From assembly GCA_033442325.1 (NCBI GenBank), contig JAWQFM010000023.1, positions 235,558 to 299,557 on the forward strand: DNA of 64,000 nucleotides, in the 5' to 3' direction. The notes under the pieces were generated by a model. That model had not been told where the DNA came from and made no database searches. It saw nothing but the letters and a program-made list of their open reading frames with translations. This stretch comes from Salpingoeca rosetta. Taxonomy: Eukaryota; Protista; Choanoflagellata. Below, in pieces: positions 38,495-50,901 of the stretch (its first letter is position 1; each line of letters starts with the position of its first letter). The position numbers and the translations under genes were made by a program.

Positions 38495-38581
38495 TTTGTG
38501 CGTTGTTGTTGTTGTTGTTGTTTGCTGGTGCTGACGAGCGGGTAGCGGGGTGAGCAGTGTTGCTGTGTAGGCAGAGTGCAG

Positions 38582-38716
38582 CACACAGAGGGTGGAAAAA
38601 AAATGAATGCGATACTGGGGACAGGGTTGCCGTGCAGGCAGGAGGCACAGTGATGCAGAGGAGCACACACGAAGCAGCACACACAGAGCGTGGAGAAAAA
38701 AAATGAATGCGATACT
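38582..38716. repeat. Direct repeat (22 nt exact, ~35 nt imperfect, 100-nt offset) duplicating the tRNA trailer and oligo-T terminator
   Basis: GAAAAAAAATGAATGCGATACT occurs at 38595-38616 and 38695-38716, each preceded by CACACAGAG(G/C)GTGG. Confidence 0.9.
38696..38703 (-). terminator. RNA polymerase III oligo-T terminator (T8)
   Basis: T8 run 9 nt after the end of the tRNA 5' half on the minus strand. A second T8 lies at 38596-38603. Confidence 0.75.
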
Positions 38717-38798
38717 AGACCGGCGCTATAACCAACTAAGCCACGAGCCCCAATCAAAGGTGAGGGCCCGGTGAGATTCGAACTCACGGCCTCCGGTT
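38713..38798 (-). tRNA. tRNA-Thr(AGT), circularly permuted: 3' half 38798-38763, 12-nt spacer, 5' half 38750-38713
   Basis: Joining GGGCTCGTGGCTTAGTTGGTTATAGCGCCGGTCTAGTA to AACCGGAGGCCGTGAGTTCGAATCTCACCGGGCCCT gives a full cloverleaf. Acceptor stem GGGCTCG/CGGGCCC, D arm, anticodon stem CCGGT/ACCGG, loop CT-AGT-AA, T arm GTGAG-TTCGAAT-CTCAC, discriminator U. Confidence 0.88.
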
Positions 38799-38819
38799 GT
38801 CTGTATCCCTTCCCGTTAA

Positions 38820-38830
38820 CCATTCGGCCA
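38820..38830 (-). promoter_or_regulatory. Pol III A box in the leader of the permuted tRNA
   Basis: TGGCCGAATGG matches the TRGCNNARYGG consensus and starts 47 nt before the B box GTTCGAATC (38783-38775). Confidence 0.65.
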
Positions 38831-39868
38831 ATGGAAATTGTTGTAGATAGCGGAGGAATTTGGATTTTTGAATTGTGTACTGCGTATGTGTGTGTGTGTT
38901 TGTCTGTGTGTGTCTGTGTATGTCTGTGTGTGTCTGTGTATGTCTGTGTGTGTCTGTGTGTCTGTGTCTGTGTGTGTGTGTGTGTCTGTGTATGTCTGTG
39001 TGTGTCTATCTCTGCGTTGTGTCCACCTCTGCGTACTGTGTTACACATCTGTGCGCTTGTTCTCGCTGGTTGACCCTGTCTGCCTGTCTGTCATCGCGAC
39101 GCGACCCCTTTGCAACAGTTCAACGTGTCCAACAGATAGATACCCCGGCACTCCACCAGACCACATGCTCGACCGTCCCATCCCCAGTCTCGGTCTGGCT
39201 CTCTGGCAGGACAATCGAAGAATCGAGTTCGCGTGGGGAGATGACATGCGCGCGCGGGTGCAGCAGAGCAGTGTATTGAGAGCAGGGCAGCAAGGTGAAC
39301 TGCGCGACCTCACAAGAACCACCCTCAACAAGCACTTCCCACGACACAGAAAGCCCAAGCAGTTCTCGGGGCAATCACAGACGCACACATACACATACAC
39401 ACGCACACACACACACACATACACGCGCGCACAAGCACACATACACACGCACACGCGCACACAGATACACGCGCGCACAAGCACACATACACACGCACAC
39501 ACACACAAGCACACACACACACATACACGCACAAATACACATACATAGGACACACTGGAATCGACACGCGTGCGCATCACAGGCATGCACACATCCACGC
39601 AGGTGTACATGTGCACACCATCGACACACATGAACGCAAAAAGGAGCAGTGTTCTGAAAGGCACAAGCCTACCCGCATCGAGTCCCAAGTGAATGTCGCG
39701 CGTGTCCCATAGGCCGAAAAATACATCCACACTCAAACACACGCTGATACACACACATACACACGCGCACACACAGACACACACACATACACGCGCGCAA
39801 ACACACATACATGCACACATACACACATACATGCACACATACACACGCGCGCGCACATGCACACGTGC

Positions 39869-41978: not shown

Positions 41979-42308
41979 NNNNNNNNNNNNNNNNNNNNNN
42001 NNNNNNNNNNNNNNNNNNNNNNNNNNNNNNNNNNNNNNNNNNNNNNNNNNNNNNNNNNNNNNNNNNNNNNNNNNNNNNNNNNNNNNNNNNNNNNNNNNNN
42101 NNNNNNNNNNNNNNNNNNNNNNNNNNNNNNNNNNNNNNNNNNNNNNNNNNNNNNNNNNNNNNNNNNNNNNNNNNNNNNNNNNNNNNNNNNNNNNNNNNNN
42201 NNNNNNNNNNNNNNNNNNNNNNNNNNNNNNNNNNNNNNNNNNNNNNNNNNNNNNNNNNNNNNNNNNNNNNNNNNNNNNNNNNNNNNNNNNNNNNNNNNNN
42301 NNNNNNNN
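41979..42308. other. Assembly gap (330 N)
   Basis: Run of N. Confidence 1.

Positions 42309-46879: not shown

Positions 46880-50901
<4,022 letters not shown>

Follow-up and report, generated by a model that had tools for sequence, protein, structure and literature searches.

Circularly permuted tRNA genes, with the 3′ half ahead of the 5′ half, have been described in Cyanidioschyzon merolae and in prasinophyte green algae (Soma et al. 2007; Maruyama et al. 2010; PMC3978253). Their transcription has been ascribed to upstream TATA-like elements, an origin by duplication has been proposed as a scenario, and C. merolae is without detectable TFC1 and TFC3 (PMC3978253). Such genes have been supposed to persist only in organisms whose Pol III transcription depends on upstream elements instead of TFIIIC, as in the red and green algae. 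In the type 2 Pol III promoter the A box (positions 8-19) precedes the B box (52-62), the TFIIIC parts concerned being tauA and tauB. In yeast, A-box mutants lost both TFIIIB placement and transcription in vitro (PMC11724288), so some A-box-like site might be needed by an organism that has TFIIIC. The locus considered here poses the question of TFIIIC dependence directly because its host, a probable choanoflagellate, encodes a homologue of tau95 (Tfc1/GTF3C5). The homologue is represented by a Tau95_N triple-barrel exon (36 and 38.4 bits) on the minus strand at C2:1351572-1351742 (L064:1501-1671), ~40 kb from permuted tRNA copies on that contig. The Pfam models PF09734 and PF04182, for the Tau95 C-terminal and tau138 B-block domains, gave no match in a six-frame search, which for an intron-rich genome is not evidence of absence. 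A literature search found no paper joining permuted tRNAs with choanoflagellates.

The window, by which is meant the whole stretch of 64,000 nt analysed (C23:235558-299557 of a 55.4-Mb genome), encodes on its minus strand a circularly permuted tRNA-Thr(AGU), with the 3′ half before the 5′ half, as direct reading of the sequence makes plain; the parts of the locus given below are all on that strand. The 3′ half (positions 38-73) runs from 38798 (A38) to 38763 (T73), with the B box (positions 52-62) inside it at 38784-38774. A 12-nt spacer (38762-38751) separates the 3′ from the 5′ acceptor strand and is followed by the 5′ half (positions 1-37), from 38750 (G1) to 38713 (A37), which holds the gene's own A box (38743-38732; 13.5 bits) and the anticodon AGT (38716-38714). 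The permutation is of type II with its junction at 37/38, and together the halves give a full cloverleaf in which the acceptor strands pair 7/7 (5′ half against 38770-38764). Trailer and T run occupy 38712-38696, the 8 Ts at 38703-38696 being a signal of Pol III terminator type, and in the minimum-energy fold of the precursor the trailer sequence GUAUC (G35 to +2) pairs with a leader strand GAUAC (38807-38803) that is found in both the window copy and those on contig C2. ARAGORN did not detect the gene and Rfam at gathering thresholds returned nothing, the misses by ARAGORN and the Rfam tRNA model being expected because the gene is permuted. The Rfam tRNA and YrlA models match the T arm of the 3′ half, and the YrlA model, in which the tRNA-like module is likewise permuted, covers the gene from end to end (28.7 bits).

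Some features of the neighbourhood and of the anticodon can be recorded in their own right. About 100 nt downstream the trailer unit (AGTATCGCATTCA with its T run) recurs at 38616-38596; the unit comprises the end of the anticodon loop, the trailer, the T run and ~70 nt, and after the C2 gene it makes up a 94-nt tandem array, 5 copies long (L002:1741-2207). At window position 38716 the sole Logan contig from run X1 has C on the plus strand, so the wobble base A34 is replaced by G. This would be an inosine-34 signature if X1 is RNA; if X1 is DNA, the strains would differ, with GGT as the anticodon in this one. Three raw RNA runs have A only at this position. Window positions 41979-42308 and 47352-47473 read as N, the letters being masked or withheld.

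Two further permuted tRNA-Thr(AGU) copies form an inverted duplication on contig C2. Compared with the window copy their 3′ and 5′ halves are 100% identical, their trailer 95% and their leader ~61%, and their spacer is 10 nt, a 2-nt indel relative to the window's 12. That deletion, specific to C2, is present in 10 of the 19 RNA reads over the spacer in run X22, and the C2 copies are therefore transcribed. A pattern scan of the genome for other permuted tRNA families gave 53 matches, against 117 in the reversed control, and only the three Thr copies qualify.

Related sequence came from a metagenome scan for a B box closely followed by a Thr D arm, which returned 38 loci where an earlier pattern had given none. 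Thirty-seven of these were rejected as tandem tRNA genes of the ordinary kind, in which 3-5 of the 7 acceptor pairs form; many of them are on contigs of gut or marine bacterial type. The other, L100 (MDTD01042756.1), carries two tandem permuted tRNA-Thr(AGU) genes (L100:1-330) with 7/7 acceptor pairs and with positions 8-37 identical to those of the window. The rest of L100 is collinear, over seven exon-like blocks at 78-85% identity, with C2:1312785-1314606, an acyl-CoA dehydrogenase gene 1.4 kb from a C2 copy, and so derives from a related organism in which the permuted gene occupies the syntenic position; the presence of syntenic permuted genes in at least two species in turn means that the permutation predates their split. 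The permuted genes stand beside the same acyl-CoA dehydrogenase gene in L100:1-330 and in C2:1311276-1314606. A search with the acyl-CoA dehydrogenase fragment for longer contigs of the related species reached at most 1854 nt in the best cluster, short of the tRNA genes. The two L100 copies have identical mature halves and spacers that agree at 5 of 12 positions, and as the mature halves are identical within the C2 and within the L100 copies, they are under selection or gene conversion.

What lies upstream of the gene is familiar from the rest of the genome. Its ordinary tRNA genes (loci L006-L063) have a common upstream motif, consensus CAAAATTTCTCC, for which a position model was made from 50 non-redundant upstream regions. 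The motif scores at least 9 bits in 13 of the 50 (background 1.6e-4 per nt), a count that is somewhat circular as the model was trained on the same genes, and it ends 15-24 nt before +1, a positional clustering free of that circularity. The permuted gene has the motif as CCAAATTCCTCC at 38863-38852, scoring 11.0 bits against a background rate of 3.9e-5 per nt. Between the end of this site and B-box position 52 there are 67 nt, compared with 72 nt in C2 and 66-75 nt in ordinary genes. An initiator-like CAACAA at 38843-38838 marks the predicted start region, the start itself being our deduction; CAA[CG][AC]A occurs at -18 to -3 in 13 of the 50 ordinary genes versus 2 of 50 in a control window. 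As judged from sequence, the outer layout of the permuted gene is that of an ordinary tRNA gene: upstream motif, putative CAACAA start region, leader of ~40 nt and B box. A reading of the window made from its sequence only had seen here a departure from reliance on upstream elements; with the usual motif and CAACAA both at ordinary distances, that claimed difference is unsupported. Neither the upstream motif nor the CAACAA-like element is mentioned in the permuted-tRNA review or in the Pol III literature examined.

The U6 gene (L136:1501-1690; C9:815095 onward) has a plain TATA box (TTTATAAAGG) at -32 to -23 instead, so the upstream motif is tRNA-specific, and the idea that it is a general Pol III element was discarded. 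U6 also has, after GCGCAA, an insertion of ~68 nt holding a perfect B-box consensus GGTTCGATGCC (L136:1591-1601), which recalls the B box in the intron of fission-yeast U6.

Between the start region and the 3′ half the leader contains an A-box-like 11-mer, TGGCCGAATGG, at 38830-38820, precisely where the sequence-only reading had put a consensus A box. For reference 58 ordinary tRNA genes were collected from the same genome, and T8, R9, G10, Y11, A14, R15, G18 and G19 are present in every one. The 11-mer of the window copy fits the consensus T8 R9 G10 Y11 N N A14 R15 N(1-3) G18 G19, and with a position model built from the genome's own A boxes it scores 11.8 bits, genuine A boxes scoring 9.2-14.9. 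The spacing had been described as close to ordinary, and it is: from the first T of the 11-mer there are 46 nt to B-box position 52 (38784), or 47 to G53, compared with T8-to-52 distances in the 58 genes of 43-46 nt for class I, 53-55 for class II and 75-79 with an intron. From the upstream motif to the 11-mer there are 21 nt, and 24 to its counterpart in C2, the distance to T8 in ordinary genes being 22-29 nt. A start predicted from CAACAA would place the 11-mer at about +9 to +13, against an ordinary expectation of 12-20 nt downstream.

Might an unrelated sequence simply happen to match the A-box consensus? The full consensus is found at one locus only, which is how an accident would look. 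The background rate of an 11.8-bit score is, however, 6e-5 per position, giving P = 0.0003 for a 5-nt band and 0.0013-0.0025 for a 20-40-nt band, and even a regular expression covering every genuine A box has a chance P of 0.004-0.008. Since a score within the genuine range is so rare in the background, the 11-mer is hardly coincidental; with C2 and L100 copy 1 each having a weaker match at that offset, pure coincidence is highly improbable, whichever band and motif definition is chosen.

The 11-mer is most likely a fossil, what is left of the D arm in a tRNA 5′ half that once lay upstream, still at the old A-box site. In three of the four known leaders (window, C2 and L100 copy 1) the best A-box-like match is 45-48 nt before the B box, an offset that fits the origin by duplication which the sequence-only reading had put forward. 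The same reading had the duplicated tRNA containing an intron, a part of the scenario that lacks support, as the 32 nt between the T8-like base and the junction equal the length of positions 8-37 without an intron. Outside its D-loop-like part the leader has no similarity to Thr or Ser 5′ halves (shuffle P 0.5-0.97), in agreement with the earlier remark that the flanks are unable to form acceptor or anticodon stems. Two descriptions of the leader were tried and rejected. A recognisable decayed Thr 5′ half was one, nothing being similar except the conserved A-box positions. Derivation from a tRNA-Ser or tRNA-Leu 5′ half was the other: the D-arm-like part fits the Ser/Leu D arm better than that of Thr (12 versus 1), but there is no similarity past the D loop (P 0.52) and the C2 leader has no Ser preference.

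In three stranded RNA-seq runs the tRNA body is covered 10-20 deep on the minus strand, and coverage fades to zero at ~38829, with few reads in the leader and none at 38830-38849. This profile is compatible with a start between ~38830 and 38845 and excludes one confined downstream of 38820; a start downstream of 38820 was what the sequence-only reading had named as telling against its A box. Across the 3′ half, spacer and 5′ half the reads are linear only, no circular joints being reported. Because reads continue past the T run and merge with a downstream transcript of far greater depth, those at the tRNA locus may not be Pol III products. The downstream transcript is abundant, on the minus strand just past the tRNA terminator (38540-38700), with 5′ ends piled up at 38678 and a depth of 100-200 as against 10-20 over the tRNA.

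Does the leader supply a substitute A box? On such a scheme tauA would dock on the 11-mer 46 nt upstream of a tauB-bound B box, so restoring the A-then-B order; TFIIIB would be placed over the upstream motif and the start site set, and degraded versions would work since tauA would read mainly DNA shape. The in-range score and natural spacing, the distances from the upstream motif, the encoded tau95 homologue, the recurrence of the best A-like site at 45-48 nt and the extension of reads to ~38829 all favour it, as does the stretch from T8 to CGGG being the best conserved block of the leader (15 of 19 bases between window and C2). The finding in yeast that tauA contacts mainly the DNA backbone (PMC11724288) can be counted on the same side. 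Comparison of the copies points the other way. The C2 leaders have TAGCCGCAAGG 48 nt before position 52, with A14 changed to C and a score of 5.6 bits, lower than that of every genuine A box. L100 copy 1 has TAGTAGGGTGG 45 nt before position 52, with A14 replaced by G and a score of 4.0 bits. The leader of L100 copy 2 has no A-box-like site (best score -4.0), the segment aligned to the 11-mer of copy 1 being unrelated to it and the neighbouring leader positions being common to both. What has been lost in C2 and in L100 copy 1 is thus a base invariant in the 58 ordinary genes and one of the four (T, G, A and G at positions 1, 3, 7 and 11) that are conserved in yeast A boxes (PMC11724288), and L100 copy 2 dispenses with the site and yet has perfect mature halves. 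A yeast pseudo-A box that matches T, G, A, G was unable to substitute for the real A box (PMC11724288), and the failure of the six-frame search to detect the tau138 B-block and Tau95 C-terminal domains is a further, if soft, adverse point in so intron-rich a genome. We regard a substitute A box as possible but doubtful, and a putative role as helper A box for the 11-mer of the window copy as doubtful to a like degree.

A consensus A box would seem not to be required for a working gene, and selection does not appear to be holding the A-box consensus in the copies. Absence of the motif from orthologous leaders had been named in advance as what would refute the promoter claim, and the other copies show just that, the scores being 5.6 bits in C2 and 4.0 in L100 copy 1, with nothing in L100 copy 2. 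The sequence-only reading had taken the leader to be a decayed 5′ half kept only as a promoter. A non-random D-arm- or A-box-like element at natural spacing survives from that proposal; ‘only as a promoter’ is left unsupported, given that A14 or the whole motif is lost elsewhere.

What the window and C2 copies do hold in common is a fold. A leader hairpin of 28 nt and 11 bp (38837-38810) is predicted whether the full precursor or just the leader is folded, with a lower stem UUUCC/GGGAA, an upper stem UUGGCC/GGUUAA and a loop GAAU, the 11-mer providing the loop and, in the upper stem, the 5′ strand. The D-arm-like CCG/CGG hairpin noticed earlier exists but is only part of this larger structure. 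In C2 the lower stem is AACCC/GGGUU, the upper stem GUAGCC/GGUUAC and the loop GCAA (-14.1 kcal/mol; shuffle P 0.002-0.006). Between the two, 11 of 11 pairs are kept, with three doubly compensated and two one-sided changes, and none of the three differences within the 11-mer disturbs the hairpin, since the pair is kept when G9 becomes A, and A14 and T16 lie in the loop; the differences obey hairpin rules, not A-box rules, which is a further mark against the substitute A box. In a neutral simulation at the observed divergence the probability of retaining at least 11 pairs was 0.003, and that of all pairs staying standard after 8 random changes at paired bases was 3.5e-4, both figures being for one pair of diverged paralogues in a structure-guided alignment.

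That compensation counts against regarding the 11-mer and hairpin as functionless, the un-erased D arm of a lost upstream half in which TGGCC and GGTTA pair with each other and so provide a hairpin for free. Much about the leader would suit such neutrality: it is only ~61% identical between paralogues, the motif decays in other copies, the L100 leaders of the related species have no hairpin above shuffles and no consensus box, and the genome's Ser and Leu D arms show the same TGGCC...GGTTA self-complementarity. Two of the three doubly compensated pairs, however, are in the lower stem, outside the tRNA-like sequence, and the full consensus in the window would have to be a lucky exception with the rest of the 5′ half erased. 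We judge a neutral fossil distinctly unlikely. The feature conserved between the window and C2 copies would then be the RNA hairpin and not the A-box consensus, a view that shares the slightly less than even credence we give to the explanation of which it is part. The sequence conservation of the upper stem, the T8-to-CGGG block, would also fit a sequence-specific DNA element, which counts against a hairpin-only reading; nor is the hairpin universal, the L100 leaders having none.

The explanation that we prefer, with confidence a little short of even, is accordingly a composite: the 11-mer would be a fossil D arm, the hairpin would be under selection and Pol III would be recruited mainly via the B box (TFIIIC tauB) and the upstream motif (TFIIIB). 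The yeast findings that the B box governs TFIIIC residence and that tauA contacts mainly the DNA backbone (PMC11724288) speak for it; the effect of A-box mutation in yeast speaks against it. Once made, the leader hairpin would fold on itself, so that the fossil stretch did not pair wrongly with either tRNA half and the GAUAC segment stayed available to the trailer for the pairing that precedes endonuclease cutting. Docking of tauA may be helped as well by the consensus where it is intact, as in the window copy. The function proposed for the hairpin is one that we infer.

Rather unlikely, in our estimation, is that the fossil D arm does double duty, as a DNA-level stand-in A box and as an RNA-level leader hairpin, and so keeps the permuted gene transcribable. 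Were it so, it would be a natural promoter prosthesis explaining how permutation survives in a TFIIIC-dependent close relative of animals. The locus offers a clean test, with three copies that have identical products, graded A-like sites (11.8, 5.6 and 5.6 bits), a common upstream motif and a covarying hairpin. Irrespective of how the 11-mer may be used now, a D-arm-like fossil at natural spacing would lend sequence-level support to a duplication origin of permuted tRNA genes.

In its order of upstream motif, start region, A-like box and B box the locus resembles the type 2 Pol III promoter, and its spacings of 21-24 nt and then 46-48 nt copy those of the genome's ordinary tRNA genes. It differs in that the A-like box is outside the mature tRNA and is not conserved among functional copies, and in that the real A box is downstream of the B box. 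Promoter boxes in a transcribed 5′ leader that is later cut off are known from yeast RPR1 and SNR52, where A and B boxes are both in the leader and both required. Unlike those genes, the one considered here has only an A-like box in its leader, the B box being in the mature part. The yeast pseudo-A box described in 2024 is likewise an A-box look-alike outside the mature tRNA, and TFIIIC alone can protect it; it adjoins a real A box, for which it could not substitute (PMC11724288), whereas here the look-alike would be the only correctly placed candidate. The closest counterparts remain the permuted tRNAs of C. merolae and the prasinophytes (Soma et al. 2007; Maruyama et al. 2010; PMC3978253), which have the same 3′-before-5′ order and type II 37/38 junction, the same short spacer between acceptor ends, leader-trailer pairing, a run of Ts following the 5′ half and an upstream promoter-like element in common with the unpermuted tRNA genes of the genome; a permuted Thr(AGT) is among those of C. 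merolae. The 2014 review of the algal genes includes neither a covarying hairpin at the 5′ end of the leader nor an A-box-like fossil at the natural distance, both of which are present here. The host here is a probable choanoflagellate and not an alga and, in contrast to C. merolae, its genome encodes a homologue of tau95.
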